Positions 25,389 to 58,967 of a stretch of DNA of 64,000 nt are shown here, one piece after another. The first letter of the stretch is position 1, and each line of letters starts with the position of its first letter. The stretch is from the IMG/VR virus record IMGVR_UViG_3300029993_000005, positions 166,111 to 230,110 of that record. One strand, written 5' to 3'. Position numbers and translations under genes: made by a program. The notes under the pieces are model-generated. The model ran no database searches, was not told the origin of the DNA, and was given only the letters and a program-made list of their open reading frames with translations.

Positions 25389-25745
25389 CTATTTAGCGTT
25401 GATAATGCCAACCAATTTGTAGTAGCCATTGGTGTTACAGATAAACTGCAGATTTTTAATTTTTGACAGGTCCTTCATCAAATTATGGATTTCTAAGATT
25501 CCGCTAGGGTCCCAAGACGTACCTCTGAGGCCCGGAATACTGCTTTTACTAGCCTTCAAATAGATCGATATGACATTATCCGCTTCTTCACCATAACTAA
25601 CTCCATCAATAATATGGTGCTTGGAGAATTCATGTTTCAAAAGTTCAGCAATTTCTGGATTTGAGGCCTCAAGTTGTGCAAAACCTGGATCGCGACTAAT
25701 ATCTGTTGCCACTAATCTTTGTGCTGCATTAACTTTGATGTTCAT
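25389..25745 (-). CDS. Hypothetical protein with AAxRL leader
   Basis: MNIKVNAAQRLVA. Confidence 0.7.
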   Translation of the reverse strand: MNIKVNAAQRLVATDISRDPGFAQLEASNPEIAELLKHEFSKHHIIDGVSYGEEADNVISIYLKASKSSIPGLRGTSWDPSGILEIHNLMKDLSKIKNLQFICNTNGYYKLVGIINAK

Positions 25746-27067
25746 TTGCTATCCTTTGATTGTTGATCAAGTTCCTCTTGTGCTTTGGTCCACGCAGCGT
25801 CAGGTATATCACCTGACTCAACGTAGTCAGCAATTGCATCAATCACTTTACCTACAAGTTCGTCGTCCAGTTTATCGCTAGTTTCGGCTGTAATCAGTCT
25901 TGAAGCAATGCTTAAGGTTAGTGAACTATGGACACCATGTCGACTATTTTTGGTGCCTGGTCCACCTTGACGTTGACGGCGGTCTATTTCTTCGTCGCTT
26001 AATGTATCATATTCGTGTTTGGATAGCGGTACCCAATCGCCGTTTTTCCAATATCCATATTTATTTGCTTCAGCTTCTTCATCTGACCACCCTTTCTTTC
26101 TAGGCTTATCGTTTCCTAGTTTCTTAATGCTCGATCCAGCACCGACCACACCTTTCTTTACCAGACTATATATTGCCGGTGCACCCAAGTGCTTAACAGC
26201 CATGAAAGCTACTAGTCCAACACCACCTGAGGCACCCAGTACACCAGCCATAGCTGCACTGCCTAGGATATTACCGACCATTGATGCAATCTTCTTTACA
26301 TCGCCTTCCTGCGTCTTACCATTCAATAGTCTGTGAGTTGCACCAATACCCGATAGTAGGCCTCCACCGTCCCTTATAATGCCTCTAATCAACCCTTTCT
26401 TCTTAGCCTCAGCTTTAACCTTGGAAGCTGCGGTTTTGCGTTGTGGACTACTTGGTTTCTTATCCTCTGGTGTTATTTTGGGTTTACTGCTTTTAGTAGG
26501 TGCTTTAACCGGCACCTTAGACTGGGGTTTTGGTTCAGGACTATCCACTCCTGACTTGTCCTTAGCTTCAGGTTTCCCTTTAGCTTTAGGTTCAGGAGCA
26601 GAATTGGGTTCAGGTTTCAACAAATCTTTCTTATTCTGCTCAAATTTCTCTTGTTCGGTTTTGGGTGCGGGTGTGGCTGCGGGTTTCTGCTTCTGAGTTT
26701 CGCTTATTGATTTAGGCAACGTCTTCTGATCCCTGGTCACGGTCACCGGCTGATTACGATCAGTGGGTCTAGATTTGGGTTTATTGTCCTCAGATTTTAT
26801 GTCATCCGCGTACTTGGAACCCGGATGTTCCTCAACGTAGTCTTCTTGTTCTGGTTTTGAGAGCTTATCAAACCATTCTTCATTGAGTTTGTATTCTTTG
26901 TCGGGTTGAGGGTTATTGACCTTATAGAATTTATTAGGCTGATTCTTTTTGACTGGCTTTTTAGTCTCTAACGGCTGAGGTCTAGTGCTCTGCATTTGAG
27001 CCTGCCCCGTAGGTGCTGCACTAATAGTTTGGGTGCTCAATAATCGAAAAGCAGCGTTGAGTTTCAT
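25742..27067 (-). CDS. Lys/Pro-rich probable internal virion protein with a Gly-rich hydrophobic segment
   Basis: MKLNAAFRL leader; WFDKLSKPEQEDYVEEHPGSKYA; GNILGSAAMAGVLGASGGVGLVAFMAV. Confidence 0.65.
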   Translation of the reverse strand: MKLNAAFRLLSTQTISAAPTGQAQMQSTRPQPLETKKPVKKNQPNKFYKVNNPQPDKEYKLNEEWFDKLSKPEQEDYVEEHPGSKYADDIKSEDNKPKSRPTDRNQPVTVTRDQKTLPKSISETQKQKPAATPAPKTEQEKFEQNKKDLLKPEPNSAPEPKAKGKPEAKDKSGVDSPEPKPQSKVPVKAPTKSSKPKITPEDKKPSSPQRKTAASKVKAEAKKKGLIRGIIRDGGGLLSGIGATHRLLNGKTQEGDVKKIASMVGNILGSAAMAGVLGASGGVGLVAFMAVKHLGAPAIYSLVKKGVVGAGSSIKKLGNDKPRKKGWSDEEAEANKYGYWKNGDWVPLSKHEYDTLSDEEIDRRQRQGGPGTKNSRHGVHSSLTLSIASRLITAETSDKLDDELVGKVIDAIADYVESGDIPDAAWTKAQEELDQQSKDSK

Positions 27068-27112
27068 TGTTGTTCCTGATCATAATTTGGTCCATAACTA
27101 TTCGGCGCATAA

Positions 27113-27985
27113 TCAAATTTGTAGATAGCTAAGAGACTTCGAAAAGTACATTAATTCTTTACCTTTTCTTAAGCTTGCATGCGCACTATACGCAAGGTCA
27201 ATTTCATGCCCCGCCCCCGCACTGGCCTTATAGCATTCTTTTATCAAGGGGTGACTGTCATAGGACATAATCCAAGGAAGCTTTAATTTCTTCTGTACCC
27301 ACGTAGCGAGTCTTCTATGGTCAGCCTCTTTATACGCATCTGTGTATAGACCCGGACCTTTCTCAACGTAAGGAGGGTCTAGATATACTAATGAATTCTT
27401 TGGTACTTGTGACTGTATACCAGACATAAAGTCCAAGGCATCTAAATTATAGATACCTATACGGGACTTGAGTTTCCCAATAGTCTGAATTCGTTTTATG
27501 AGTCCATCTTTGTTGTAACGAGCATCTAATTTATATGTTCCAGCCTGTTGTTTTCCGCCGATAACACCAGCCTTTAGGATCCCAGATCTGTTCACCCTAT
27601 TAAGAAAGAATGTAGCAAAACCTAGGTTTAGAAGAGGGGCTTTATTTCTGTTCAACCAAGTCTCACGTTGAAGATACCAAGTGTCCATGGTGCAAGGCAC
27701 TGTTTCGATAAGAGAGCACAAAGCATCTGGTTTACGAATACAGCTATACCAAAATGCATAAATCGCTCTATCGTAGTCGTTGAGATGAATCGCGCTAACT
27801 GAATCAGTCAGCAATAAGCCTAGTGCTAATCCGGCTCCGCCACAGAAAGGTTCTATGTAGTGCCCGCTCTTTAACTTATTGTTGGCTATTAGTTTTTGAA
27901 AATACGGGAGTAGTTGAGACTTCCCACCGGGGTATCTTAAAGGTGTGTAATTAGTAATTTTCTTTCCTAGATTAGTCCACAACAT
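27113..27985 (-). CDS. Intact Dam-like (D12-class) DNA adenine methyltransferase
   Basis: TPLRYPGGKS, YIEPFCGGAG, LNDYD, YLDPPY; ATG 27985 preferred over GTG 28015. Confidence 0.92.
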   Translation of the reverse strand: MLWTNLGKKITNYTPLRYPGGKSQLLPYFQKLIANNKLKSGHYIEPFCGGAGLALGLLLTDSVSAIHLNDYDRAIYAFWYSCIRKPDALCSLIETVPCTMDTWYLQRETWLNRNKAPLLNLGFATFFLNRVNRSGILKAGVIGGKQQAGTYKLDARYNKDGLIKRIQTIGKLKSRIGIYNLDALDFMSGIQSQVPKNSLVYLDPPYVEKGPGLYTDAYKEADHRRLATWVQKKLKLPWIMSYDSHPLIKECYKASAGAGHEIDLAYSAHASLRKGKELMYFSKSLSYLQI

Positions 27986-28066
27986 AGTTGGTTTACTGCA
28001 TTCAAGTCGAAGCACTGAGCACTAAACTATATTTACTATGTTGTGGAATAAGTCTAACAAAACATT

Positions 28067-28573
28067 TTACACATCTTGAACGTAATCGAAGCTCCAACCG
28101 ATCTGTAGTGTAATCAGATTAGAGGCTCCACCGTCAAGCTCCACCTCGTTCACGGTCTCCGGCCACATACCGTAAACGTTAATAGTTCTACTAACTTGGG
28201 GTAAATCGTTATATACGACTATCTGACCATTTACGCCATATGAAGACTTAAAAGTACCGCTATTATTAAGCCATGAACGGGCGCTTTCAGACCAAGCATA
28301 AAACTGAGCACGTGTACTCCAGTCAGAGGCTTCCATGAAAGTTGAATTAAAACTTCCCGTGTAAGTCTTCATGCCCGCATAGTTAAGTTTTGTTCCGTGC
28401 AAAGGAACTACAACTTTATCCATTGCAAAGCCAGGAAGGCCAGTGGTCATACATTTCCAGGTTAAGGCCTGTGTAGAACTAGAGCCTGGAATAGCTGGTA
28501 AAAAAAGATCAAAATTCCAAGACTGAGCTGGGTCGGCAACCGCTTGTACATCTGCTAAACTCGAACGTCCCAT
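28067..28573 (-). CDS. Tail tube protein (T4 gp19-like)
   Basis: 168 aa; W.F.L..P, C....LPG, NYAG..TY.G.F..TF.E, GMWP.TV; near the sheath gene. Confidence 0.8.
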   Translation of the reverse strand: MGRSSLADVQAVADPAQSWNFDLFLPAIPGSSSTQALTWKCMTTGLPGFAMDKVVVPLHGTKLNYAGMKTYTGSFNSTFMEASDWSTRAQFYAWSESARSWLNNSGTFKSSYGVNGQIVVYNDLPQVSRTINVYGMWPETVNEVELDGGASNLITLQIGWSFDYVQDV

Positions 28574-28599
28574 AATACACCTCTAGGTTTAATGATTAA

Positions 28600-28637
28600 T
28601 GACTAGTGACTAGTGACTAGTGACTAGTGACTAGTGA
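28600..28637. repeat. Tandem heptamer (TGACTAG)x5 plus TGA
   Basis: Read directly; intergenic, 27 nt upstream of the tail tube ATG. Confidence 0.95.
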
Positions 28638-28673
28638 TTGATGATTAAAATAACAATAGGTTGATCAATCAAA

Positions 28674-29078
28674 TCAACCCAAAATTTGAATAACTGGATC
28701 CCAACCCTCTCTTAATTCTCGGACTCTGATCAAGCAGTCTTTACCTTTAAATAGATAAGAATTAGGTGGCTCCCCATGGGGTATAGGCTGGGCCTTGAAA
28801 TCAAGCATTTGAACGGCCTTTAAAAGCTTCGCGAAATCGCAGTGACAACCTAAGCTAAAGTCCGCTTGGTTCAGGTGCACTCTTAGACCATGCATTTTCA
28901 ATAACTGATTTAAGGCTATTGCTTTAACTCCACGGGTGCCTATGTCCGCTACATGCTGTGGATTCTGGCCCTTGAGCTGGTACTTAGGTTCTTCATGATA
29001 AGTAGCTAGTAATCGATGCCAGGCCTTAGACTTGATAACGACGCCTAGTCGTGGATTAACTGGAATTAAATTTTCCAT
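28674..29078 (-). CDS. Hypothetical protein
   Basis: ATG 29078 (MENLIPV) follows the upstream stop. Confidence 0.6.
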   Translation of the reverse strand: MENLIPVNPRLGVVIKSKAWHRLLATYHEEPKYQLKGQNPQHVADIGTRGVKAIALNQLLKMHGLRVHLNQADFSLGCHCDFAKLLKAVQMLDFKAQPIPHGEPPNSYLFKGKDCLIRVRELREGWDPVIQILG

Positions 29079-29085
29079 AAGTGTC

Positions 29086-29859
29086 TCAGCCCAATGGTTG
29101 TTGACCCATGTTAAAGAGTCGAGGATCAGCATCACTTAAGACCTCGTGTTCTAAGACCTGCTCTCTAGTCATATTGGCTTCTTGATCCTCGTTCAAAACA
29201 CCGGGCAACGATTCGTACATAAAGCCATCTGATTTAGAAGTCGATGGCGGACCGGCCTCTAATTGTTTTTGACCTTTCTTTTGCTTAGCATAGCTTTGGT
29301 TATCACCTTCTTCGCCAATCATTTGATAGCCGTCAAATAAGCCTGGCATCCCATCTGTATCCACAGTCGAATTAGCAATCCTAGGTTTAACTTTAGATTT
29401 AACTTTAGATTTAAGTTTAAGTTCGGCCCTAGCTACTGGACGCTGCTTAGTATTAGGTCTACGCGTGGACTCTTCTAGTGCAGCGTTCTCCATGTCCATT
29501 GTTAGGGGGTCGTCCTCAGCACCGGATTCAATACGAAACAAACGTAATGCAGCCTTAATCTTAAGATAGGCCTGGGCGTGGGCGTACTGAGCATCAGTTT
29601 GTTGGGTCGTCGGATTCTTGCTCACTGGTGTAGAACTAGCTGTAGTGTCCGTGCCCGTGTCTTTAACTGCTGTTTTATCCATAGCTGATTTAGGGCTAGT
29701 GCTAGTGCTTTCTTTGTTCTCAGTCGTTTCCCTGGTATCTTGCTGATGCTCTAACTGCTTTTCGTTCTGGGACTTGAAATCTGTAGCTGGTGCTATTACG
29801 TCTGAATTCGACTCAGCAACTAGTCTGAATGCTGCCCTTACCTCGGTTTTAATTTGCAT
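29086..29859 (-). CDS. Low-complexity protein with two AAxRL motifs
   Basis: EVRAAFRLVA near the N-terminus; KIKAALRLF internally. Confidence 0.7.
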   Translation of the reverse strand: MQIKTEVRAAFRLVAESNSDVIAPATDFKSQNEKQLEHQQDTRETTENKESTSTSPKSAMDKTAVKDTGTDTTASSTPVSKNPTTQQTDAQYAHAQAYLKIKAALRLFRIESGAEDDPLTMDMENAALEESTRRPNTKQRPVARAELKLKSKVKSKVKPRIANSTVDTDGMPGLFDGYQMIGEEGDNQSYAKQKKGQKQLEAGPPSTSKSDGFMYESLPGVLNEDQEANMTREQVLEHEVLSDADPRLFNMGQQPLG

Positions 29860-30779: not shown

Positions 30780-32732
30780 TCATTGAGGAGTAACTTGCGA
30801 GAGCGCTTCTGTAAAGGATACACCCTGTTGACTAATAACTACTTGGAGGTTAATAATATGCGTTGGCACCAGCGGAATTACGATCACCGTCACATTTCTA
30901 ATTCCAGAATTAAAATCCTGAGCCGTATTATTCGAGTTGTCACTAACAACAGTGAAACTAGAAATACCCCGAGCATTCTGAATAGATTGCAAGTAATCAG
31001 TACACGAGGCTACGATCTGACGGCCTAGAAAATCATCATTAGGTTCCTGCAGGGCGTATAGCAAGAAGTTATACAACGCTGTCTTCATCACGTTGACGAT
31101 TCGCCGTACACTAACCCATGACAGGGCACTAAATTGAGCAGCTAATGTTTGTTGTTCCCACAGAGCCGTACCTTGACCGATGAATGTTTGCGTGTAATTA
31201 ATCTGCGCATCAAACAGGTCATCCATCTGTCCAGCATCATAGGTGTAACGGGTACCCAATACATTGACGATACCTCGGTTTAAGCCCGCGATACTGAAAG
31301 ATGGATTGGCCACGCGGTCTGTACGTGCACACAGGGCTGCAGCCCAACCAGAGAACGGCACATACTGTTGCTTGCCATTAATCGTATCTGCTTCCAACAT
31401 ATCGGGGCTAAAGATCGCGCTGTACGTTGAATTAAGATTAAGCTGCAGATTCCTATAGTTCAAGGCATTCTGGAACTGCTGGCTAGCACTTGGCATATCA
31501 ATTAAAGATACACAATCACCACGAGATTGAGCCAGTGTATCCATTGCTAGTTGAACGGTGGGCGTCGAGTTACCCGAGTTCAGCAATATATTGATCGAAT
31601 ACAATTGTTTATTCTGGAACGTCGACCACGCAGCTGCTACGTCATACGGTGTAGGAGCTGTTCCCGAGTCACCGCCAGCCATTGCAGTGGAAGCCACGCT
31701 ATCAATAGGCGGCAAGTCAACAGGATAGCCAGGAAGCGCCGGTACATTGGATGTCACTTGAATATACTGAGAGAACGGGTTAATCCGCTGCTCCAATTCG
31801 GTCTCCATACCCGTGCTATCCGTGTAATCAATTAAAGAGCAGTTGAACTGTTCCACAGGGTAATTCAGACTCTGGCTCAAACTATAAACGTTTAGGCCGA
31901 AAGTGGGGCTGGGTGCTGCAACATTGGCCGGACTGGTAATAGGCAGAATCGCAGGATTGGGGATCAGTGCCCCTGTATCGATGAAGCTCGATGTACCCTG
32001 CCCAATCGTTGCCATAAGCCCGTAGGTGCCCCCAGTAACCCGCCCATACAGGTTATAACCGATGGCATTGGGGTCAATCACCCAGGTTACGGTCACCGTA
32101 TTCGTCACACCCATACCACTAATAATGATCTGGGCAGGAGCTGAGGCCAGGGTCTCACCTGCGGGACCCAAGCTAGAGACCTGGTACTGGTAGGTACCGG
32201 CTACTAGGGTGCCGCCTGTCAGGGCTGAGGCTAAGGTAGGTTCGGCTGGTTGCTGAAGATTAGAGCTAACAATCGAGATTGCTAGGTTATCCCCGTAGCT
32301 TCCGGGTCCCAAATTCGGGTAGAACAGAGCCAGTGCTTCGTTAGTAGAACCTACAGGCAGAATAGCTGCCCAATCGGGTTGGGTAGGATCGACAATACCT
32401 GCTGCAATTGGCGTCAAATAGGTTAAGACGCCATCGCTCCACATGAGAACTGATGAGTAAAGTGCACCTTCACCAACAACTCTAAGGCCCCAGAGTTGAT
32501 TACCTTCACTGAAATAATCTAAGGCGCAGTAGACGTCGAAACTGATCTGCGCATTTGGATTACCATACTGGCTCAAATAGTTCTGACCATTGGTGAATAG
32601 TTTAGGACTAGTCGATCCTTGGTTGGATACTATAACTTGGGCTACTACGGATGTTGAGGCCGAGGTAATAACTTGAGAGAGATTAATTTCCTGGATTATT
32701 ACCTTACTCGACTGCTGTGCTGAGATGGTCAT
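30780..32732 (-). CDS. Tail sheath protein
   Basis: PGSYGDNL, RGDCVSLIDMP, YSAIFSP, PFSGWAAA, PSFSIAGLNRG, GTALWEQQTL, VSVRR; fibronectin/Ig-like insertion. Confidence 0.93.
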   Translation of the reverse strand: MTISAQQSSKVIIQEINLSQVITSASTSVVAQVIVSNQGSTSPKLFTNGQNYLSQYGNPNAQISFDVYCALDYFSEGNQLWGLRVVGEGALYSSVLMWSDGVLTYLTPIAAGIVDPTQPDWAAILPVGSTNEALALFYPNLGPGSYGDNLAISIVSSNLQQPAEPTLASALTGGTLVAGTYQYQVSSLGPAGETLASAPAQIIISGMGVTNTVTVTWVIDPNAIGYNLYGRVTGGTYGLMATIGQGTSSFIDTGALIPNPAILPITSPANVAAPSPTFGLNVYSLSQSLNYPVEQFNCSLIDYTDSTGMETELEQRINPFSQYIQVTSNVPALPGYPVDLPPIDSVASTAMAGGDSGTAPTPYDVAAAWSTFQNKQLYSINILLNSGNSTPTVQLAMDTLAQSRGDCVSLIDMPSASQQFQNALNYRNLQLNLNSTYSAIFSPDMLEADTINGKQQYVPFSGWAAALCARTDRVANPSFSIAGLNRGIVNVLGTRYTYDAGQMDDLFDAQINYTQTFIGQGTALWEQQTLAAQFSALSWVSVRRIVNVMKTALYNFLLYALQEPNDDFLGRQIVASCTDYLQSIQNARGISSFTVVSDNSNNTAQDFNSGIRNVTVIVIPLVPTHIINLQVVISQQGVSFTEALSQVTPQ

Positions 32733-33877: not shown

Positions 33878-34297
33878 TTACTTTTTCTTGGTAGGAATCA
33901 ATTCAGCCAAGGCTTTAGCAAACAGAGCTTTAGCCAATGCCTCTTTATCATCCGTCTTATCCTCGTCCTCAACAGCCTCGTCTTCTACTTCTTCAGGCTC
34001 GCCTTCGGGTTCGGCTTCAGCCTCAACCTCTTTACCCTCTTCGTCTTGGTCACCAACCAGATGATCCAGAGCTTTTTCTTCAGCCGCTTTTACCTTAACT
34101 TTCTTGGCATTAGCCGTAGCCTCTACCTTGGCTGTGTAGGCCTGAGCATTATTATGCTCAAGAATAGCGATAGCCGACTGCACGTCCGGTTGGCTAAGAG
34201 CTTTAGCAAAAAGAGCTGCTGCCGTTTTAGGCTTGCCCTTTGATGCTTGCTCCATGGCCAATACCACGTAGTCCAAGGACTTGTTGTAAGTCTTCAT
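33878..34297 (-). CDS. Acidic head-module protein
   Basis: Glu/Asp-rich; internal repeat ALFAKAL x2; last gene of the capsid transcript. Confidence 0.7.
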   Translation of the reverse strand: MKTYNKSLDYVVLAMEQASKGKPKTAAALFAKALSQPDVQSAIAILEHNNAQAYTAKVEATANAKKVKVKAAEEKALDHLVGDQDEEGKEVEAEAEPEGEPEEVEDEAVEDEDKTDDKEALAKALFAKALAELIPTKKK

Positions 34298-34348: not shown

Positions 34349-35377
34349 CTAAATCAACAACTTTAAATTGAGCAAGCGTGTAATCTCATTTTTAGTCCAG
34401 AACTTTTCAGTGGGGTAAAACATCCCATCGATATGAACATAAGTCTTGTACTCGGCAAAATGCAGACTTGCAGCTTCCGCTTTAGCACGGTTCTCTATCA
34501 GAGCTTCTTCTTTGGGCATCCAGTGATAATCTCTTAACCCTAGAGACGACAAATCTTTAATCTCTATATAAGTATCTCCAACCTTAAAATCTGGAGAATA
34601 CTTAGCCATTCTATTTAGTCTTGGATTAAAATAATCTACTGATTCCTTGGGTTCATATACTATGTCGTCAACGGGAGTAGCCCTGTGTTTAACTAAATGC
34701 TCAACAAAGGCTTTCTCGATCAACGACCTAGTATTGAAATCCTTACCATTAATTCTGAACTTAAACCATATGTGATTTGGGTGGCAGATAGGACATATTC
34801 CAATAGTTTTTAGCTTGAAGAGAGTTTCAGGTTGATGACTTACCTTATGCCCACATTTAATATATTGATGCAAGATCGGAGTCTTCGTACCTTTATACTT
34901 CTCTATGACACGTATGTTATTACTACGTTCTGTCACTTCAGCTACATAAACATCATTCGGTTTCTTAACCCAAGGTCTACACTTGGAGCACGGATCTATG
35001 CACATATTGAAACAAGACAATCGCATGTCGAACACAAAACCGCAGTTATGCTTGTAGGTGAAAACAGTGCTATCTTTACTGCCTTCACCTTCTGTAATTT
35101 TTATGCATTTGTAGTCACCTTTACCTGCACTTTTTAGATGTTCGGTATAAGTTTTAGGCGTTCTCTTAACTTTGTAGAACTGCCGTTTATGAGTACATCT
35201 ACATGCGTGTCCCATCTTACTGTGCTTGCATTCAACAATCCGCAACTCATTACAAGCATTACATTTAACCTCAAACTTGCGGTCACCCAAGACCCTGAGC
35301 AACTTATAGTTAAACGTTACTGAATACTTGTGAGCATAGTCCTCAGGACTAAGTGGTTTAGGTCCAGTCTTTGCCAT
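34349..35377 (-). mobile_element. Putative free-standing homing endonuclease (Zn-ribbon repeats plus PD-(D/E)xK domain)
   Basis: Several CxxC and H.CG..F units; YSPDFKVGDTYIEIK; inserted after the capsid gene; ATG 35377 preferred over TTG 35389. Confidence 0.7.
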
Positions 35378-35535
35378 TATTCTGTCCAATAATATTTAAT
35401 TTGATGAGGTAGATTAGTCCGGACAGGAACCAATCAGGGCCGCTAAACCTTTTCCCTCAAACTCGTTCAAGCTTCTGATAGAGAACCGCGCTAAACACGG
35501 AGTCTTAAGGCTTATTGTTGATTAAACGTTGGTGC

Positions 35536-36627
35536 CTACACACGTAAACCTTTCGCGACGGATCTGCTGTTGGCGATAGACACGGCCAAACTTTCATACA
35601 TCACCCATCCGCGACCCGGAATACGCTCAATAGAAATGTCGATAGGTTGCGATTGCAGGCCACCACGATCCGAGTAAGCACCGTGATTCAATGCATCGGC
35701 AATGACGAAGAACTCACCTTGGTTCAACACCTTATGTTCCGGATGACGATAAGCGTCCGAAGTAATCGTGCAACCATACATCACACCCAGTTCACCGGTC
35801 AGCAACAACTCGTGACGTGCAACCGGATCAATGGCGGCAAAGAAATCCGAATTACCGATGATGTCCTGATAGATATCGGTAGCGATCAGGACATGCGGTG
35901 CTTTCAGGCCCCAGCGCGTAACGTTCGTCATTACTTGAGCGAACGTGTAGGGCGTAAGCTGACCTGAGATAATCGACAGCGGATTATCAATACCTACGAT
36001 CTGATTCACCTGGTTGTACCACAAGCGATCTTCACCCACCATGATTGCTTCGGTTGCTTCAACATACTTCTCTTGCAGAACGTCGCCAGCTGATTGGTTC
36101 AACTCGTTCATCGGAATAAACGGACGAGTAACGACTTGCATTTCCGGCGGTGTAAACCATTTATCGCGAGTGATCTGCGACTGAATCTTGGTGGGGCTAG
36201 TCGAGTACACAGCCGTTACGTTTTTAGTACGCAAGGGGAACCGTGGGATAGCGCCTTGCTCGACGGTAATCTTCGTCAAGTACTTGCGCATAAAACCCTG
36301 ACGATTTGCCGTGATATACAAAGAATCGCTAATCTTTTCACCCAAGACACGATGGGCTTCTTTGTCGTTGAACGCTGCTTGCACTAGTTCGCGACTAAGC
36401 TTGACTTGTTGCTCTGCGCTAGCAAATACACCATCAGCAGCCAAGGAACCATTCGAGGATGCAGCCAAGAACTTTTGTTGGCGGTTAATAAGGTCACGTT
36501 TATCCGATGCATTAATTTCACCGTTACGACCAATTGCACGCTCACCTTCTTGCATGCCGTCGAAACGATACTCGGATGCTGCCACCATTGGCGTCTTCGA
36601 CGCCCGAACCTGAACTTTTGTACGCAT
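35536..36627 (-). CDS. Major capsid protein
   Basis: 363 aa in protease-scaffold-decoration-MCP order; GGAG RBS; AIMVGEDRL, GELGVMYG patterns. Confidence 0.85.
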   Translation of the reverse strand: MRTKVQVRASKTPMVAASEYRFDGMQEGERAIGRNGEINASDKRDLINRQQKFLAASSNGSLAADGVFASAEQQVKLSRELVQAAFNDKEAHRVLGEKISDSLYITANRQGFMRKYLTKITVEQGAIPRFPLRTKNVTAVYSTSPTKIQSQITRDKWFTPPEMQVVTRPFIPMNELNQSAGDVLQEKYVEATEAIMVGEDRLWYNQVNQIVGIDNPLSIISGQLTPYTFAQVMTNVTRWGLKAPHVLIATDIYQDIIGNSDFFAAIDPVARHELLLTGELGVMYGCTITSDAYRHPEHKVLNQGEFFVIADALNHGAYSDRGGLQSQPIDISIERIPGRGWVMYESLAVSIANSRSVAKGLRV

Positions 36628-39451: not shown

Positions 39452-39487
39452 AAAGCCACCGATTTCATTTAAGAAAAGGGTGGCTTT
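39452..39487 (-). terminator. Terminator after the protease gene
   Basis: AAAGCCACC/GGTGGCTTT stem followed by CUUUUU on the - strand. Confidence 0.7.
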
Positions 39488-47751: not shown

Positions 47752-47764
47752 GACAGGTTTCTCT

Positions 47765-48145
47765 CTATAGGGCACGCAATTGGGACAGGACTTCGTCTAG
47801 TCCAGGTACCTTTTTATTTACTTCCGTTGCTGCTTTTCCGATTGAAGCCAGTAAGCTTTGATCATCCGAGCCTTCGGCCTTTAATTCGTACTTGTATTTA
47901 GAGGCCTTGAAATAAAAGTTTAAGTCCTCATCAACCGTACTGAAGTTCAAGACCGCTTGATACTCGGAAGTGCGCCAGATCAAAGACTGGTTGGTAGACG
48001 ATCTATCATCCAGCAGAAAATGAATGCCTAGAATTCTTTTTAGAATGGTCAGCACGTTTTCCACGTCCTCGGGACCTGCCTCTATGTTGGTGCCTTTCTC
48101 ATCGGCGTCTGCCAATAGGCGTAGGGCTGCTGTGATCATGGTCAT
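47765..48145 (-). CDS. Hypothetical protein with AAxRL leader
   Basis: MTMITAALRLLA. Confidence 0.7.
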   Translation of the reverse strand: MTMITAALRLLADADEKGTNIEAGPEDVENVLTILKRILGIHFLLDDRSSTNQSLIWRTSEYQAVLNFSTVDEDLNFYFKASKYKYELKAEGSDDQSLLASIGKAATEVNKKVPGLDEVLSQLRAL

Positions 48146-48173: not shown

Positions 48174-48500
48174 TCATCTTTTCTTTAATTGTGCTGCTCT
48201 AACTAAATGTGGGTGCCTACGGTCGTGACAGGCCTGGCACAAAAGAATTAAGTTAGATAAATTATTGGTGCCACCAGCGTTTAACGGCTGTATGTGGTGA
48301 ACCTCAGATCCAGGCTTTAAACAACGGGTGCCCCTAATTAAGGCCTGGCACACACCTTTATCCCTAGCATAGGCCTTGGCTCTGAGTTCCCACCAAGAAT
48401 TGTTCTGGGTGAACCCATTGACCGTCGAATAACTGTCTCTTTTTATGCTGGCTACGCCATGCACATTTCGGGCTCTTGGTCGTGATCTGCGCGCCAGCAT
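48174..48500 (-). CDS. HNH endonuclease
   Basis: RDKGVCQ, EVHHIQPL..GGTN..SNLILLCQACH. Confidence 0.9.
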   Translation of the reverse strand: MLARRSRPRARNVHGVASIKRDSYSTVNGFTQNNSWWELRAKAYARDKGVCQALIRGTRCLKPGSEVHHIQPLNAGGTNNLSNLILLCQACHDRRHPHLVRAAQLKKR

Positions 48501-49010: not shown

Positions 49011-49358
49011 TCAAATGGAAAAGAAAATTCTTAACGCTACCTGCACGCGCTGCAAGCATACGCCGTCGTTACCCTTAACCGCGAACGAAACCCTTTTGAA
49101 TATTCCAGGGCTTGCATTCATGGCGTACTTTAAACGGTTCAAAACTTCAACAGAGGCTTCGGCCTCACGTCCAACATCCTCTGGATTGCTCTTGTGGAAC
49201 ATCAAATGTGGGTGTACGAATTTATAAATTAAGCCGTGCTTGCGCAACTCGGCCTGTATTTTACGAAGCTCATCACCTTTACCTTCGTGAATTTGAGCCT
49301 CTACTTTTTGTTCTTCATCTTCTATAGCTTTCAGTCTCTGAGCTGCATGCACGTACAT
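49011..49358 (-). CDS. Hypothetical protein with AAxRL leader
   Basis: MYVHAAQRLKA. Confidence 0.7.
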   Translation of the reverse strand: MYVHAAQRLKAIEDEEQKVEAQIHEGKGDELRKIQAELRKHGLIYKFVHPHLMFHKSNPEDVGREAEASVEVLNRLKYAMNASPGIFKRVSFAVKGNDGVCLQRVQVALRIFFSI

Positions 49359-49918: not shown

Positions 49919-50215
49919 TTAGTGCCAGTAACTTAAGTTCAGGTTTCCACCGTGGACCCCAATAGAGATTTCATGATTGGCTTTGGTGTACGTGTCCAGG
50001 CCGTCAACTTCGGATGCCTTCTTTGCGTAGCTAAAACCTGCGATCTCTAAGTTATGAATAAAACGTGCGGCCTTTTCATAAGCATCTTTAGGTGAACTGC
50101 ATCTGAAAATATTGGTGCCCAGTTTAAGTTTGAACCCACCTTCTTTTTCTAGGTCCTCACCGGCATAAACCGTAGTAGTTGAGGCCAGTATTCGCTGACG
50201 TGCATTTGTTTTCAT
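49919..50215 (-). CDS. Hypothetical protein with a variant leader
   Basis: MKTNARQRILA. Confidence 0.65.
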   Translation of the reverse strand: MKTNARQRILASTTTVYAGEDLEKEGGFKLKLGTNIFRCSSPKDAYEKAARFIHNLEIAGFSYAKKASEVDGLDTYTKANHEISIGVHGGNLNLSYWH

Positions 50216-50218: not shown

Positions 50219-51751
50219 TTAAATTCCACGATTTCCAAAGTATCCTGGAGCATAAGCTCCCCACATTGAGGCCTGCGTAATCGTAATTCCTACGGCACCG
50301 ATTGCTCCGTGTTGAAGTTGACCAGCGTTGACCGATCCATCACCTGAAGTATTTCCCTTGATAATAAGATTGGTTTTGATCAGCTTCAATTCGTTATCTA
50401 ATCGGGTTTGAATAGCAGTTGCAGCAGCCTCTAAATATTGAGTTCTATCTACGTCTAAACTAATTGCTGCACCTTGAAAATTAAAGGATTTCTCAGCCTC
50501 CGAAAGATAAGCACTGGCTAAGGCGGCAGCTTCACTGCATAGTAACCAAAATTCACGAATACCACCCAGTGCATTTGTGAACGTGAAATTAGTAAACTGT
50601 CCATAAGCGATATTGAATGCGTCACCACCACGGCGTAGCCAGGTTAAAATAGTTGAAGCAGGGAACAACATATCAGGTGTTCCATAAAGCGTAGTCCGTG
50701 CCTTATTAATCTTGGCTTTAACGTCATTGACCGCACTCATGATCGACGGATTAACAACAAAGAAATCAGCATTTTCCTGATTGATGATTCCCGTATTAGT
50801 TGATGCCCAGTATTTCCAAATTATTTGGTAGGGAACTAGGGATACGCCTAATCCCGAGGTATCTAATACACCAGCAAAGTACCAACCATTAGCAGTTCTT
50901 TCATAGGCTTGAATCTGGGTCGGGGCCACTACTTGAGTGGGTCCAGCCCATAATTCGACTGTCACATTATCATATAGCGTGTCCAACACAATTGAAACAG
51001 TAGCTGGTACACCCTGGAGCTCGACTGATGGTTGGGTACCCAATGGAACTGTGTTCAACCCCACCACCCGAACGTTCTCGAATTGAAAAAATACGTTCTG
51101 GCCTAGGTTCCCTGCTGTGGGATCAGGTGGTGTTCCATACTCTTGACTTAGACTTAGCGTATATCTTAATTGATAGGCTTGTCCATCTAATGATGGTGGG
51201 ACTGTAACGGGCACCGTAATAATAGATTTGGCAACTACAGTATTGGCCAACCCATTTGATTGCACAGTGTAGTCGAAAGCATTACCTGCGGCATAAACAG
51301 TACCGTCTGAGGCTAGAAATTCCCAGGTAACAAAACCACCGGAAGGGTCTATTTGCGGGGGAAACGCAAATACGGATGTTCCGACGGCTGCTTTACCGGC
51401 TTCTATTTCGTCTACTAAGTCTTGGAACGCATCTGGATTTTCAGTGGTGTAAGGAATAAATTCTGCTTGTGAAACTGATGTGGCGACAGTGACGATGAAT
51501 ACACGAGCATTAGTAGTAATTGTTAACTGAAAGCCATAACTAAGTCCGTCATTGCCGCCCGTAATCGTTAATCCAATTACCGAGCTAGTGCCTGTCGTGA
51601 CTGTTGCTGACAAAGGAGTGCTAGTGACGGGACTGGCTGTACCTACAACGATGCTGGTGATTGTCTCAGCCCCAATCAACATTGAGGTTACATCAGCAAT
51701 AACGGCTATATCTGTTGTTGGTGTCTTAAAATAAACATAAGGTACGGCCAT
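50219..51751 (-). CDS. Neck / head-tail adaptor with N-terminal Ig-like domains
   Basis: Beta-rich N-terminus; helical C-terminal domain L.WLRRG.D.FN..FNFQG. Confidence 0.55.
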   Translation of the reverse strand: MAVPYVYFKTPTTDIAVIADVTSMLIGAETITSIVVGTASPVTSTPLSATVTTGTSSVIGLTITGGNDGLSYGFQLTITTNARVFIVTVATSVSQAEFIPYTTENPDAFQDLVDEIEAGKAAVGTSVFAFPPQIDPSGGFVTWEFLASDGTVYAAGNAFDYTVQSNGLANTVVAKSIITVPVTVPPSLDGQAYQLRYTLSLSQEYGTPPDPTAGNLGQNVFFQFENVRVVGLNTVPLGTQPSVELQGVPATVSIVLDTLYDNVTVELWAGPTQVVAPTQIQAYERTANGWYFAGVLDTSGLGVSLVPYQIIWKYWASTNTGIINQENADFFVVNPSIMSAVNDVKAKINKARTTLYGTPDMLFPASTILTWLRRGGDAFNIAYGQFTNFTFTNALGGIREFWLLCSEAAALASAYLSEAEKSFNFQGAAISLDVDRTQYLEAAATAIQTRLDNELKLIKTNLIIKGNTSGDGSVNAGQLQHGAIGAVGITITQASMWGAYAPGYFGNRGI

Positions 51752-51754: not shown

Positions 51755-52525
51755 TTATCCTTGAACGGGTGTACTTGGGAGCATTATATTATTGACGCCC
51801 ATACCTGTTCGTGTAGGGTGGTCCCCAAACAAATCAGGCTCTGAATTTAAATCCTCTGTCGTGGTACCGAACCCAGGTTCGTCAACTAGTTTGGCACTAA
51901 CTGAAGAACCGAGGTCCTTTAAGTCTTCAAAACTAAAAGAGGTTCCCAGCATCAAAAGTCGTATCAAATGTGACTTAGCTATTCTTTCTCTAGTCTTTGG
52001 TGACAATATTTCGAGACCCATCAGGTCAATAAGATATGTAGGGAACACTGAAGCTAGGTTCCTCCACAACAGGTTGGCGGCTCTAGAATGTGAGTCACCG
52101 GTCATCAGACAATTACCGGCTTCAAGAAACCATGAATAGATACTTGATACTATTTTCTGCTTCTGATGATCGGGATTAATCTCAGCATGAGGCGTGTATA
52201 GCTTGTTGCCCAGGGCACTTTTCAACTCCATGGTTTTACCATTGAACTGTGTGGCACCAATGCTATTAAAAGTCACCAACCCCACTAAAGAATCTTGAGG
52301 ATAAGCATCAAGTAAATCGTCATGGATAAAAATATAGAAACTATAATTAAAGCTAGCTACGGTCAGCCAAATATTAGGTCTATCTGTTTCGACTATCCGT
52401 AATTCACCTTTCGCCTGAACCCTTAGCCATTCTTTGATAACAGCATCATGATCGTAATTAGGGCCTTCAAATGTACGGAGGGCCAGCAGTCTTGATGCTG
52501 CATAAACTTTAGTTAAGCCTTCCAT
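51755..52525 (-). CDS. Hypothetical protein, possibly GNAT-like fold, with AAxRL leader
   Basis: VYAASRLLA; INPDHQKQKIVSSIY..LMTGDSHSRAANLLW. Confidence 0.45.
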   Translation of the reverse strand: MEGLTKVYAASRLLALRTFEGPNYDHDAVIKEWLRVQAKGELRIVETDRPNIWLTVASFNYSFYIFIHDDLLDAYPQDSLVGLVTFNSIGATQFNGKTMELKSALGNKLYTPHAEINPDHQKQKIVSSIYSWFLEAGNCLMTGDSHSRAANLLWRNLASVFPTYLIDLMGLEILSPKTRERIAKSHLIRLLMLGTSFSFEDLKDLGSSVSAKLVDEPGFGTTTEDLNSEPDLFGDHPTRTGMGVNNIMLPSTPVQG

Positions 52526-52545: not shown

Positions 52546-53829
52546 TTAGAACTGCAATAGTTTAGCTATCTGGAGGCCCGTGAATCCAAATTTGGAACCC
52601 AAAACCTCAGCGTCATGAGGAATGACCGCCGATTTAATACCCGAGGTTAGAGGTTCAAACGATATGAATTTCGCACCAATCTTCACTCTAAGTTTTACGA
52701 CCGGACTATTGGCAAACAAACGTTTGACCTCAAGATAAAGCGGATACTTAATTTCGTCTATCTGTTCGACAGTAGTATTCGCTTTGAGTCTAAAAGATAT
52801 ACATTTAGCATCAACGTCAACTTTCTTTATATAATCACAGTAGTTAAACATAGAAGCACTGAACTTGGAAGGATCATTCTTCATTCTGGTAGACAGTGGA
52901 ATAGCAGCTAGGCTAGTACTGAAGTTCTCTTGTTCCAAAAGTTTGTCTATCACCACTAAGGCTTCGTTCAATGAACTAACCTCGGAACCGCCATCAACTA
53001 GTAACAGATTGGGTAAGTCAAATTCATGATTAACCTGAATTTGAATTCCTTGGTTCACAGTCCATTGAAGGCTGATGTAGAGATGGGGCGTTACCTGTAG
53101 GTCATCATTCTTTACGTTCTTTAGCAAGATGTAATCCGTAAAGATTAGGGCTCCGTCTTTGACACTGACGTACAAAAACTGTTCCTTGTGCTCGAATATA
53201 ACGTGCTCTTGAAGCTCTTGGACTAATGTCGATACGTAGCTCTGAAACACTTTAGGTACGTAGTGTGAGGCCACGCTGCTCAAGAATTCTAAAACGTTTT
53301 TTAACTGAAAGCCAATCTTGTCCTTCAGTGCTTTTAACAGTCCGTAGGCCTTCGTGTAAGGCTCGCCCCGCTTATCCGTGAACTGTATAGCCAACTGCGT
53401 TTCTAGGGCCTCTAAAGCCCTGTATTTCTCGTACAAGTCTTCTGACAATACATATTGCGTATTCAGCTGTTCAATTTTGGGAACCAAGGTCTTCAAGGAC
53501 TCATGATCAGGATCAGTTTGAGTCTCGCCGTCTAGACTCAAGCCGCTGGCCTTAACTAGGCAGGGATGAGTGTGGATTTGTGCCTGATTTAATTTTGCTA
53601 GTTGTTGCTGCTGGACTCCACTTAGCTGACTTAATTCTTTAACCGTGCTTCCCGTCTGGTCAAGAAATCGAGCAACATCGTCAATATATCGGAACTTAGG
53701 TAGCTCCAAGGCACAAATACGAGCAGCTGCCTTGACTTGAGTTCTTGGTTTATTTTTTGACGTTTTAACGTTACCTGTTTTATCTTTAGTCGTGCTTGCT
53801 TTCAATCTCTGGGCTGCATTGGTAGCCAT
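52546..53829 (-). CDS. Probable virion protein with AAxRL leader
   Basis: MATNAAQRLKA. Confidence 0.7.
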   Translation of the reverse strand: MATNAAQRLKASTTKDKTGNVKTSKNKPRTQVKAAARICALELPKFRYIDDVARFLDQTGSTVKELSQLSGVQQQQLAKLNQAQIHTHPCLVKASGLSLDGETQTDPDHESLKTLVPKIEQLNTQYVLSEDLYEKYRALEALETQLAIQFTDKRGEPYTKAYGLLKALKDKIGFQLKNVLEFLSSVASHYVPKVFQSYVSTLVQELQEHVIFEHKEQFLYVSVKDGALIFTDYILLKNVKNDDLQVTPHLYISLQWTVNQGIQIQVNHEFDLPNLLLVDGGSEVSSLNEALVVIDKLLEQENFSTSLAAIPLSTRMKNDPSKFSASMFNYCDYIKKVDVDAKCISFRLKANTTVEQIDEIKYPLYLEVKRLFANSPVVKLRVKIGAKFISFEPLTSGIKSAVIPHDAEVLGSKFGFTGLQIAKLLQF

Positions 53830-53876
53830 GATCATCCTTAAGCTAATGTGCTGGGCTGTGCTTGTCTGATGTTAAA

Positions 53877-56472: not shown

Positions 56473-57048
56473 CTAGCGGATCGAAAGTTCGGAGTTAACC
56501 AATCTGGATGCTGCATTGACTTTGACACCCGTGCTTAAATTCTGTGCTCTACGTTTCAAGGCTTGCTCCAACACGAATTGCACATGTGGATCATCCAGTA
56601 CCGCTTTAAGTCCTGGATGCATTGGCTGAGGCCATTGATTGAAAGCTGTCCAAATAGCAGCCGTCGATTCTGACCTGAATTCTGATTCTGGGTTGACTAC
56701 GAACTGCTTGGGGACAGTAACAAAATAAGTGTGGTACTCAAAGCCTTTTCCATTTCTGGATACCTTGAGCGGCATTACAGACCACTCACCGTTATAGCCG
56801 GTCTCTTCTCTGAGTTCCCGGCGTAGGGCATTGACCAAGTCTTCTGCGCCGTCAACGGAGCCACCCCACGTTCCGTAGCAATTCGGTGTATCAGAATGAG
56901 GACCACGTAGCTGGAAACTAAAGTTACCGGTGTCTAGGGCCAGTACTAAGGCTCCGACTGCTTGGTGATATCCTCTGATGCCGGGTCCCCAATTCTCTTT
57001 ATCCTTAGACGCCTCTATAGCAATAAGTCGTGACGCTGCTTTTATCAT
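56473..57048 (-). CDS. NUDIX hydrolase with AASRL at both termini
   Basis: Nudix box GGSVDGAEDLVNALRRELREETG; ATG 57048 (MIKAASRL); ends VNAASRLVNSELSIR. Confidence 0.9.
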   Translation of the reverse strand: MIKAASRLIAIEASKDKENWGPGIRGYHQAVGALVLALDTGNFSFQLRGPHSDTPNCYGTWGGSVDGAEDLVNALRRELREETGYNGEWSVMPLKVSRNGKGFEYHTYFVTVPKQFVVNPESEFRSESTAAIWTAFNQWPQPMHPGLKAVLDDPHVQFVLEQALKRRAQNLSTGVKVNAASRLVNSELSIR

Positions 57049-57049: not shown

Positions 57050-58498
57050 TTATAGTCCACTGTCAGTTCGAAAATTAGAAAAGGCCCACACATCTGAGTC
57101 GTCGTGCTCGTCGTCATACAGTTCACGATTTGCATGGGCTAGGGGCGTCCAATCGCTGTAGACCGCAGCAATAGGCCCAAGGAAGGGCGAAGCGATGTTT
57201 AACACGAATTCAAATGGTAGGTCCTCTGGTTCGCAATAACCTTGATTAGGATTGTCCAGCATCCAAACAATAGCACCTAACATTGAACCCACTACCTGCA
57301 ATGTTGTTGCGTTTTGCCCTTCTACCAGTTCCCGTGATTCTTCGATAGAAAGTTGCGATCCGTACCACAGGGCATTCCGTTCATGACCTAGAAGCAAGAC
57401 CCCTAGTTCATCGATTCCGCTCTGAATACTATTTTTAGCAATTCGGGTCTTTCTGTGCATCCACAATTCTTGTCCCTTCATTTCATGGACAGACGCAATT
57501 GCAGCATCACACGGTTGATACGCATAGTAACAGGTCGGTCGATAATTCTCTGTACTAAAGTATTCGCTGATAGTGATGGCTTCCGAGTGCTGAATCAAAT
57601 AGCCGTTGAATGTACCGCCCAAAGGTACCCACGACTTAACCGTGGTCTCCACACCCGGTTGCTCTAGATAGAGCACAGAGCCACCAGCGAGTTCTTTACC
57701 GTCAGCAGGAATCTCTTTTTCGTGCGTGCCCCACCCCATTTCTGCTGGTGCTCGACCCTCAGCCCAGAACCCTTCACAGCTCCAGGTGTTGACGAATTCA
57801 TTAACACGCTTGGGTTCTTTCAGAATTTGTGTATCGCGCTCAGCCGTTTGAATTATTTTCACATTCAGGGCTTCAGCTAGCATTCCCCATTGCTCTTGGG
57901 ACTCAGGGGTCCCTGTTTTCAGACCTGTATCTTTTGCGAGTTTGAGCAACGCCGCTTTAACAAAATGCGAAACTAGACCTGGATTAGCTCCATGCGTCAC
58001 CACACAGGTAGAGGCCCCAGGATAGGCCGAGGCCATTCTTCGCATTTCTTGATGCGTTGTGTAGAGCGTGCGTTCACCCAGTTCCGGAATGATTTCGTCG
58101 GGTTCAGTAGCCCAACGTTCGATAGACGTGTCAATGTAGAGCACATTATTTTGTAGGCACCACTCAACGATTTCTAGTCCGTCTATGTTCAAGCTTACGT
58201 TAATCAGTAAGTCACCGGGACTCAATAATTCATTTAGTGTTGGCACCAAATTAGATTTGACGATTTCACGATGAACGTAAGTTACACCCAAATCTTCGTA
58301 TTTAGCAAATTCAGGGCGTACCTCTTTATCCAGAACGACTACCGCGCTAGGACTTACATCGAGGTGACGTAGAATTACGGGGAGAATCGATTGACCAACA
58401 CCACCGAAGCCTAGGACCAGGATATGTCCTCTGTGAGTTGCTAGTTTTTCGTGTTGATCCTCCAGCAGTCGTTGTGCAGCGTGTATTTGAACCTTCAT
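57050..58498 (-). CDS. hss: Homospermidine synthase
   Basis: GFGGVG Rossmann motif, YIDTSIERW, THGANPGLVSHF, NTWSCEGF..EG..PAEMGWGTHE, HSEAITI, NATTLQV; ATG 58498 with AAGGA RBS. Confidence 0.93.
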   Translation of the reverse strand: MKVQIHAAQRLLEDQHEKLATHRGHILVLGFGGVGQSILPVILRHLDVSPSAVVVLDKEVRPEFAKYEDLGVTYVHREIVKSNLVPTLNELLSPGDLLINVSLNIDGLEIVEWCLQNNVLYIDTSIERWATEPDEIIPELGERTLYTTHQEMRRMASAYPGASTCVVTHGANPGLVSHFVKAALLKLAKDTGLKTGTPESQEQWGMLAEALNVKIIQTAERDTQILKEPKRVNEFVNTWSCEGFWAEGRAPAEMGWGTHEKEIPADGKELAGGSVLYLEQPGVETTVKSWVPLGGTFNGYLIQHSEAITISEYFSTENYRPTCYYAYQPCDAAIASVHEMKGQELWMHRKTRIAKNSIQSGIDELGVLLLGHERNALWYGSQLSIEESRELVEGQNATTLQVVGSMLGAIVWMLDNPNQGYCEPEDLPFEFVLNIASPFLGPIAAVYSDWTPLAHANRELYDDEHDDSDVWAFSNFRTDSGL

Positions 58499-58529
58499 AT
58501 CAATCCTTTTAAGCACTTTCACTTTCAGC

Positions 58530-58967
58530 TCACGCAACGCTGATAATTTTTGTTTTATTTCCTATGTCCTCTAATTCTACTTCGTGCTCACCTTTACTGA
58601 AATGATTGACCTCGGCGGACCTAGCCTTTGCCCAGTCGTTTGCATAAAGCTTGGCCTCAACGTCTTTTAACGGCGCGTCAACGATCACGAAGTCCTCGTT
58701 GTCCGGACGTTCATACGCATACTGCAGTGTATTTACCCAACCCTCGAAAGCATCTGCTTCCATCTTGGAGACCGCGACTAGGCGTAAGGCTGCTTCAACT
58801 TTAGTGCTACCTGTCATTTTGTGATAAATATAATTAGTCAAAGCATAGGGCTCTTTCTTGCCGCTGCTTTTCTTGGCCTTATCCTCAGCGTCCTTCCATT
58901 TATGTTCAAGACTTTTCTTGCTACCTTTGCCTTGTTTTACGTCATGTTTAATTATGTTATTGGGCAT
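58530..58967 (-). CDS. Two-domain basic protein with an AALRL linker
   Basis: MPNN..KGSKKSLEHKWKDA..; KVEAALRLVA between the domains. Confidence 0.7.
   Translation of the reverse strand: MPNNIIKHDVKQGKGSKKSLEHKWKDAEDKAKKSSGKKEPYALTNYIYHKMTGSTKVEAALRLVAVSKMEADAFEGWVNTLQYAYERPDNEDFVIVDAPLKDVEAKLYANDWAKARSAEVNHFSKGEHEVELEDIGNKTKIISVA

Follow-up and report, generated by a model that had tools for sequence, protein, structure and literature searches.

Why do about 15 unrelated proteins of one jumbo virus share the same short peptide at a terminus or at a domain joint? The question is raised by the final 64 kb of IMGVR_UViG_3300029993_000005 (230,110 bp), an uncultured RSL1-like jumbo virus; this stretch of DNA is henceforth referred to as the window, and the shared peptide, h-N-A-A-x-R-L-x-A (h, hydrophobic; x, any residue), as the tag. 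The answer that we favor, with a probability of roughly 0.55, is that the tag is a clade-specific, transferable element of 11–13 residues that loads proteins into the virion, likeliest into the prohead interior, and that is probably clipped by the prohead protease.

Every tag site listed in a sequence-only reading of the window was present where it had been placed, in frame and on the minus strand. That reading had also put a motif between the domains of a gene named by its position 58530; the motif is indeed there, while the gene starts at the ATG at 58967 and the motif forms a fusion joint. The sites are as follows.

25707-25733, minus strand: VNAAQRLVA, N-terminal (residues 5-13), in the 118-residue orphan gene 25389-25745; 29.1 bits.
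27035-27061, minus strand: LNAAFRLLS, N-terminal (residues 3-11), in the 441-residue gene 25742-27067; 31.0 bits.
29004-29030, minus strand: SKAWHRLLA, degenerate (residues 17-25), in gene 28674-29078; 14.3 bits; not listed in the sequence-only reading.
29815-29841, minus strand: VRAAFRLVA, N-terminal (residues 7-15), in the 257-residue gene 29086-29859; matched by the position matrix as well.
29533-29559, minus strand: IKAALRLFR, internal second tag at residue 101 of gene 29086-29859; 11.0 bits.
47314-47340, minus strand: LKAALRLTE, C-terminal, 3 residues ahead of the stop, in the conserved gene 47302-47775; 20.9 bits.
48110-48136, minus strand: ITAALRLLA, N-terminal, in the 126-residue gene 47765-48145; matched by the position matrix as well.
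49326-49352, minus strand: VHAAQRLKA, N-terminal, in the 115-residue gene 49011-49358; matched by the position matrix as well.
50183-50209, minus strand: TNARQRILA, variant, N-terminal, in the 98-residue gene 49919-50215; 16.4 bits.
52481-52507, minus strand: VYAASRLLA, N-terminal, in the 256-residue gene 51755-52525; matched by the position matrix as well.
53797-53823, minus strand: TNAAQRLKA, N-terminal, in the conserved 429-residue gene 52546-53835; 28.9 bits.
57019-57045, minus strand: IKAASRLIA, N-terminal, in the NUDIX hydrolase gene 56473-57048 (start ATG 57048; Pfam NUDIX).
56494-56520, minus strand: VNAASRLVN, C-terminal, 6 residues ahead of the stop of the same NUDIX gene; 24.8 bits.
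58460-58486, minus strand: IHAAQRLLE, N-terminal, in the homospermidine synthase (HSS) gene 57050-58498 (start ATG 58498; Pfam saccharopine dehydrogenase domains).
58773-58799, minus strand: VEAALRLVA, at the fusion joint of gene 58530-58967, which consists of a 56-residue module, the tag and an 80-residue domain.

The AAxRL core occurred 13 times in the 14,394 residues encoded by minus-strand genes and was absent from the 6,160 residues of all 32 plus-strand genes, in agreement with the earlier impression that the plus-strand replication proteins lack it at their termini. Upon shuffling of each protein (n = 2000), AAxRL appeared 0.52 times on average and 4 times at most, so the sharing of this peptide by unrelated proteins is real and stronger than first noted (13 copies against 0.5 expected). 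Enrichment at termini was likewise observed, with 9 of the 13 copies beginning within 8 residues of the start Met (binomial P = 2e-11), and plausible ribosome-binding sites accompany the start codons of the tagged genes. A position matrix trained on other phages only, from which the window sequences were left out, returned 14 window matches at 11 bits or more, including the variant at 50209 and SKAWHRLLA, with 0.11 expected at 12 bits or more. Where the anchor h-N-[AS]-A stood within 8 residues of the ATG in the relatives, x-R-L followed in 46 of 50 cases, which indicates that the two halves of the motif are coupled. The helical hydrophobic moment of the tag is low (0.25–0.37), and its first half alternates between hydrophobic and polar residues as in an extended substrate strand.

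The tagged window proteins displayed no mutual similarity when compared with the motif masked (best E = 0.07), and this result, along with their differing folds, rules out common ancestry. A secretion or lipoprotein signal was excluded by the sequence itself, in which a hydrophobic core, a twin Arg and a lipobox Cys are all lacking.

The window phage belongs to a clade with phiRSL1, BcepSauron and Motura. Its head genes are ~65% identical in DNA sequence to those of the Burkholderia phages BcepSauron and BcepSaruman, and likewise of BCSR5 and Ralstonia phage phiRSL1, with Achromobacter phage Motura at a greater distance; its gene order agrees with that of all these phages. The tag was compared in BcepSauron, RSL1, Motura and eleven loci from nine further IMG/VR contigs (cited by L numbers), and the same peptide was found throughout the clade. 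Across 15 non-redundant loci of RSL1/Sauron/Motura-like phages there are ~115 N-terminal copies, ~13 genuine C-terminal copies and several that are internal or at fusion joints. The clade consensus is [M/V/I/F]-K-[L/I/V]-[N/Q]-A-A-x-R-L-x-A-[T/S/A/D], beginning 2–5 residues past the Met; written with the start Met it is M-K-x-K-[LIV]-[NQ]-A-A-x-R-L-x-A-[STA]. Sub-clades have versions of their own, namely LNAAxRLxA, I-Q-A-x-x-R-L-x-A in Motura and L014, and A-A-x-x-R-L, one residue longer, in several RSL1 genes, which suggests co-evolution with a phage-encoded rather than a host partner.

At all loci, the tagged genes share the orientation of the structural ones. Locally they account for up to one gene in three, as in L020, where 21 kb contain ~20 of them. 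In Motura, of which 217.6 of 221.4 kb were covered, ~15 convincing tagged genes (14–15 of 18 pattern matches) all lie at 113–145 kb, where they surround the capsid, protease and connector genes, and none lie in the other ~185 kb. No shared N-terminal motif was detected in the regions compared of Dickeya phage JA29 and Xanthomonas phage PhiXhv-15, which are distant and have a homologous protease. A tblastn search of all phage records with a 22-residue tagged N-terminus gave no match, the query being too short. The sequence-only reading had cited no earlier description of the motif, and a literature search, which did not extend to key subscription papers, including those on RSL1 virions, likewise turned up neither the motif as AAxRL or its variants nor any targeting or cleavage motif reported for RSL1-like phages.

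Individual window families retain the tag to differing degrees. It is carried by five of the six related genes found for gene 47765-48145, and as the tag or a variant by eight of nine orthologues of the 429-residue gene 52546-53835, in which it is followed by a basic Lys/Thr-rich linker and then a conserved domain. The orthologues of the variant-bearing 98-residue gene in L020 and L027 have canonical tags. BcepSauron gp077, at the same genome position as window gene 29086-29859, also has both an N-terminal and an internal tag, and the C-terminal part of the 441-residue protein is similar to that of BcepSauron gp075. In the 429-residue family, a second conserved element, (K/R)-V-x-A-(V/I)-E-L-P-K-F-R-Y, was observed at residues 30–45, after the basic linker and directly before the conserved domain, and is a candidate for a further h-x-A↓h processing site (the arrow marks the scissile bond). 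An ESM Atlas search with the 429-residue protein gave nothing usable.

The tag behaves as a portable module. The window and L026 versions of HSS carry it, and those of RSL1 (ORF110) and Motura do not. The Motura HSS and NUDIX genes (NC_049849 74267-75577 and 54803-55228, L036) lie in a non-structural region without a tag, while the window counterparts of both are tagged members of the structural block. Within the NUDIX family, which includes the tagged RSL1 ORF109, an N-terminal tag or variant was found in 8 of the 10 members listed; of the exceptions, one was called from an internal GTG and one is a fusion that aligned far from its tagged start. The window NUDIX protein and its L026 orthologue are tagged at both ends.

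Fused and split proteins display the same behavior. Gene 58530-58967 joins its conserved 56-residue module to the 80-residue domain through the tag in the window and in L020. L026 encodes the halves as two genes, 6 kb from each other, of which the first ends in a full tag and the second begins with one; the halves are likewise separate in L027, where the second is a stand-alone tagged gene, and in BcepSauron and L022 only the first half is found, with a C-terminal tag. The pattern recurs in two more families, the L019 7563/L026 13498 pair and the 47302-47775 family, the latter having its tag at the C-terminus in L020, L008 and L026, internally in L011/L019, L027 and RSL1 ORF125, and not at all in L012 and L014. 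Stand-alone proteins keep the complete motif at the extreme terminus, where a cut would remove few residues, which indicates that the peptide is recognized as a unit and does more than separate domains.

The window proteins of recognizable fold that carry the tag are the NUDIX hydrolase and HSS. Those of the relatives are a NUDIX fusion, three SprT-like proteins and an ADP-ribosyltransferase (PF03496, E = 2e-28). The ADP-ribosyltransferase, NUDIX and SprT-like classes resemble those that other phages deliver from the head, which supports an address-tag reading. The remaining tagged proteins are orphans, mostly basic, whose lengths have a median of 155 residues and which turn over rapidly between relatives; searches of Pfam, PHROGs and NCBIfam with the tagged orphans and head-module proteins gave almost no matches. 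No tag was found on the capsid, sheath, tube, connector or protease, nor on the SNF2 protein, the Dam-like methylase, the dCMP deaminase or the HNH endonuclease. The modular address tag proposed by the sequence-only reading is thus supported indirectly, in that the element is portable (HSS), is used at either terminus, is kept by each half of split proteins and is confined to the structural block; presence in the head is what such a tag would predict.

In L027, two tagged genes are adjacent, 6536-7282 encoding an ADP-ribosyltransferase (PF03496/PF01129) and 5358-6533 a NUDIX protein with an extra 150-residue N-terminal domain that contains an R-L-Y-H-Q-T motif. They look like an NAD/ADP-ribose effector pair.

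The surrounding genes are arranged in the window as follows.

6.5-23.5 kb, plus strand: replication block.
Minus strand: structural block, with enzymes and many orphans interspersed.
28067-28573, minus strand: tail tube, assigned by gene order and by an N-terminus like that of the annotated RSL1 tube, ORF142; untagged.
30780-32732, minus strand: tail sheath; untagged.
33878-34297, minus strand: acidic helical scaffold-like protein, directly downstream of the capsid gene; named by no family.
35536-36627, minus strand: major capsid protein (phrog_2522, E = 1e-97); no motif match.
39505-40410, minus strand: prohead protease of HK97/COG3740 type (phrog_18299, E = 8e-83); untagged.
41368-46026, minus strand: SNF2-related-domain protein of 1552 residues; untagged.
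50219-51751, minus strand: head-tail connector; untagged.

The protease has 1075 homologues in the representative library and no match in Pfam. His144, Ser202 and Glu260 do not vary among 87 of the homologues and are the presumed catalytic residues. An AlphaFold2 model built from the 87-sequence alignment (predicted local distance difference test score, pLDDT, 82) matched 'COG3740 phage head maturation protease', 'prohead serine protease' and XkdF in a Foldseek search of BFVD with a probability of 1.00, and on this model the enzyme is a prohead protease of HK97/COG3740 type by fold. Neither an assemblin nor T4 gp21 was present among the 50 of 107 PDB matches listed for the model, none of which reached E ≤ 0.001. 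The hhalign comparison with T4 gp21 aligned N-R-N-x-x-x-[FY]-P and the conserved His and Ser regions at a probability of only 1%, and that with HK97 gp4 was not significant (0.6%). The sequence-only reading had argued from assemblin-type cleavage at V-x-A/(A,S). That argument is weakened by the PDB matches just described and by a third invariant residue that is Glu, in place of the second His of the Ser-His-His triad of assemblins; with an HK97-type fold, assemblin specificity cannot be carried over directly. Many protease homologues span 610–870 residues, their match being interrupted near residue 145, and these probably carry inteins or inserts. Fusions of the protease fold with ferritin/Dps domains or an HK97 capsid protein occur among predicted viral proteins in BFVD.

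Cleavage of the tag by this protease is nevertheless plausible from the tag's composition. Positions 0 to 6 are conserved alike in N- and C-terminal tags. Ala occupies position 8 of 84 of the 115 N-terminal tags and of only 4 of 13 genuine C-terminal ones (P = 0.0035), and 77% of the N-terminal tags have Thr, Ser, Ala or Asp at position 9. The retention of Ala8 and a small residue 9 in N-terminal tags only would be explained if a scissile L-x-A↓S/T were needed solely when protein follows, in parallel with the T4 capsid-targeting sequence, whose cut lies on its C-terminal edge. By sequence match, the tag holds two sub-sites that fit a (V/L)-x-A↓S-like consensus, h-N-A↓A and L-x-A↓S/T. A further point in favor of head loading with clipping is the location of the protease gene in the same block as the tags. 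The protease of PaBG, a distant relative, is a structural match to 39505-40410, and PaBG virion proteins are processed (PMC7412058). At residues 10–20 of the capsid protein, P-(V/M)-(V/Q)-A-A-(S/T)-E-(Y/F) is conserved in the window, RSL1 and L014, with P-V-V-A-Q-D-Y in L012; this stretch too is h-x-A↓A/S-shaped, and the PHROG capsid profile begins at residue 28.

A docking partner may be found in the product of 33878-34297, which looks like a scaffolding protein from its helical N-terminal part, Lys/Ala-rich stretch, long Asp/Glu-rich stretch and C-terminal F-A-K-(L/A)-L-A, the last conserved in all relatives. Its orthologues in L012, L014 and Motura have an internal h-K-A-x-x-R-L-K-A just ahead of the acidic stretch, and the F-A-K-(L/A)-L-A end is similar to the tag core (K/R)-L-x-A. 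The protein is therefore a candidate partner or model for the tag, which, speculatively, may use the docking site of the scaffold tail. The capsid protein 35536-36627 is a possible receptor surface.

From this pattern we infer the following course of events. Late in infection, tagged proteins would be made alongside the structural proteins, and the tag would dock on a phage-encoded partner in the prohead, whether the scaffold-like protein 33878-34297, the inner face of the capsid or the protease. The HK97-type protease 39505-40410 would then probably clip the tag, cutting N-terminal tags at L-x-A↓S/T on its C-terminal edge or, alternatively, at h-N-A↓A, so that the cargo is freed within the head and could be delivered with the DNA at the next infection. 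A more specific version is offered tentatively, as less likely: used at either terminus, the tag might mimic the capsid-binding C-terminal helix of the scaffold for T=27-class heads and be clipped by the HK97-type protease, and the phage would inject an interchangeable arsenal made up of ADP-ribosyltransferase, NUDIX, SprT-like peptidase, homospermidine synthase and dozens of orphans.

Several observations weigh against head loading. HSS is an odd cargo, and its untagged orthologues work without a tag. Some tagged genes (25–30 kb) lie among tail genes, so that a tail or other destination is conceivable. Since the capsid, scaffold-like protein and protease are without the motif, it cannot be just a general site at which the protease cuts, and C-terminal tags, which are trailed by 1–10 residues, make poor sense as pure cleavage sites. 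Similarity of the protease to assemblin or T4 gp21 was undetected, both among the 50 of 107 Foldseek matches listed and, for gp21, by hhalign.

The peptide might instead be a processing site and nothing more, at which the prohead protease or a phage SprT-like peptidase removes propeptides or separates fused domains and which carries no targeting information. Such a role would suit the motif at fusion joints in at least three families, the extended-substrate-like alternation of its first half, the constraint on positions 8 and 9 only where sequence follows the tag, and the h-x-A↓small shape that h-N-A↓A and L-x-A↓S/T share with herpesvirus protease sites (YLQA-T and VQA-S of pseudorabies virus, PrV; PMC4498786). 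We consider it unlikely, given that stand-alone proteins keep a complete motif of 9–11 residues at the extreme terminus, that the usual head-processing substrates are without it and that eleven conserved positions exceed the usual subsite needs of a protease. A different late assembly could also be the target, be it the tail lumen, baseplate or neck, or the tagged proteins could co-assemble into an internal body with no docking on capsid or scaffold. This proposal, which differs from head loading in destination alone, draws on the four tagged window genes (25389-29859) placed either between the genes for sheath and tube or downstream of both, and on the spread of tagged genes over both head and tail parts of the block in all relatives. 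It is likewise unlikely, since the tagged genes are mostly neighbors of those for protease, connector and capsid, and the size of HSS (482 residues) and the number of tagged proteins suit a T=27-size head over a tail lumen.

ClpX reads short signals at either terminus, and its N-motif-1 (lambda O, Dps) has the form polar-T/hydrophobic-hydrophobic-basic-hydrophobic, a loose resemblance to N-A-A-x-R-L. The tag could accordingly be a terminal degron, recognized by an AAA+ unfoldase or protease of the host or the phage, that limits protein lifetime or hands the protein to a translocase; some jumbo phages encode ClpX/ClpA, which are proposed head-protein translocases (PMC7824862). Variation of the motif between sub-clades that infect closely related Burkholderiales hosts points instead to a phage-encoded partner. 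With C-terminal copies that stop short of the extreme end, internal copies, a restriction to the structural block that is unexpected for a general degron, and no AAA+ protease gene identified within the window, a degron is very unlikely. Finally, a nucleic-acid signal near gene starts, such as a promoter, translation signal or recombination site, could be translated by chance, and most copies do lie within 40 nt of the start codon. The invariant residues, however, are encoded with free synonymous variation, the invariant Arg by four codons (AGA 6, CGA 3, CGT 2, CGC 2) and the invariant Leu by five (CTG 4, CTA 3, TTG 3, TTA 2, CTT 1), both being six-fold degenerate amino acids. Selection therefore acts on the peptide and not on DNA or RNA; as copies also lie at C-termini and inside genes, and the motif is kept across genomes of very different G+C content, the nucleic-acid explanation is refuted.

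Other features of the window were noted in passing. The 1552-residue SNF2 protein adjoins the protease in every relative, within the head module, and may be a packaged and injected protein. An AT-rich stretch of 327 nt without an open reading frame (39178-39504) separates the protease gene from a gene for a 547-residue protein; the same position holds a tagged gene of 165–213 residues in L008, L011 and RSL1 (ORF133), and BcepSauron is without it. PDB sequence searches with the 547-residue and a 510-residue head protein gave no matches. HNH endonuclease genes (Pfam HNH; phrog_559) are inserted into the structural block at 48174-48500 and 34349-35389 and probably encode homing endonucleases. A D12-class N6-adenine DNA methyltransferase gene (27113-28015), untagged, is the immediate neighbor of the tail tube gene. 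The minus-strand neighbors 1973-4645 (890 residues) and 4667-6541 (624 residues) have near-identical N-termini, MSF(L/V)(F/L)QLT..AGAALLNA.TGPI, and are probably paralogous tail fiber genes with swapped distal parts.

Should the tag load proteins into the head, it would provide a sequence rule that lists the packaged, and probably injected, proteins of the whole jumbo clade from the genome alone, in a group whose hosts are Burkholderia, Ralstonia, Achromobacter and uncultured bacteria and whose genes are mostly orphans. Dozens of small proteins would become candidate early host take-over or anti-defense factors, NUDIX hydrolases and homospermidine synthase would be recognized as possible virion cargo, and foreign proteins could be loaded into large capsids by means of a 12-residue handle. 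The principle of the T4 capsid-targeting sequence (CTS) would then have a second, independent example, suggesting that cargo tagging is general in large phages.

The CTS of T4 is carried by the internal proteins IPI-III and by Alt, and gp21 cuts at the Leu/Ile-x-Glu site with which it ends. The tag resembles this sequence as a short N-terminal peptide on otherwise unrelated, fast-evolving proteins, with an ADP-ribosyltransferase among the cargo and genes in variable islands. In T4, the CTS directs proteins into the prohead core before the prohead protease removes it. It is the only element common to Alt, an ADP-ribosyltransferase, and the varied internal proteins, which it loads into the scaffolding core; the T4 internal proteins turn over quickly, as the small tagged orphans do (PMC3012670). 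The ADP-ribosyltransferase, SprT-like and NUDIX cargo classes are those of T4 Alt and of injected polyvalent proteins (PMC7824862). The two systems differ in that their sequences are unrelated, the tag having no conserved Glu in its logo; the tag also occurs at C-termini and fusion joints; the protease is of HK97/COG3740 type and not of gp21 type; metabolic enzymes (HSS, NUDIX) are tagged; and the function proposed here is deduced from genomes.

Encapsulin cargo-loading peptides are short terminal peptides on diverse enzymes that dock inside an HK97-fold shell, are transferable and work at either terminus. Here, too, a terminal peptide is found on diverse enzymes encoded near the gene for an HK97-fold shell, with a different consensus; encapsulin cargo is neither cleaved nor injected, and capsid binding is in our case a proposal. 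The HK97 protease is said, by Duda et al. in 2013, to have a C-terminal targeting tail. The cleavage sites of phiKZ-like phages and SPN3US are three-residue S/A/G-x-E motifs at variable distances from the N-terminus, and are also present in the capsid protein. These sites are no fixed 11-residue terminal tag. In these giant phages, the prohead protease acts on many head-internal and ejection proteins at a short motif that they have in common (PMC10052503, PMC5694885).

The M- and R-sites of herpesvirus assemblins have the same h-x-A↓S/T/A shape as the tag. The M-site adjoins the capsid-binding tail of the scaffold, and that of cytomegalovirus, V-N-A↓S-C-R-L-A, is near-identical to V-N-A-A-x-R-L-x-A, a resemblance mentioned as a lead only. 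The herpesvirus site is located in the scaffold and not on cargo, and the fold of the window protease, with no assemblin among the 50 of 107 PDB matches listed, is a further difference. The principle of terminal targeting is thus known from the T4 CTS, encapsulins and the HK97 protease tail; unusual here are a tag used at both termini and at fusion joints, its association with an HK97-type protease, and metabolic enzymes as cargo.

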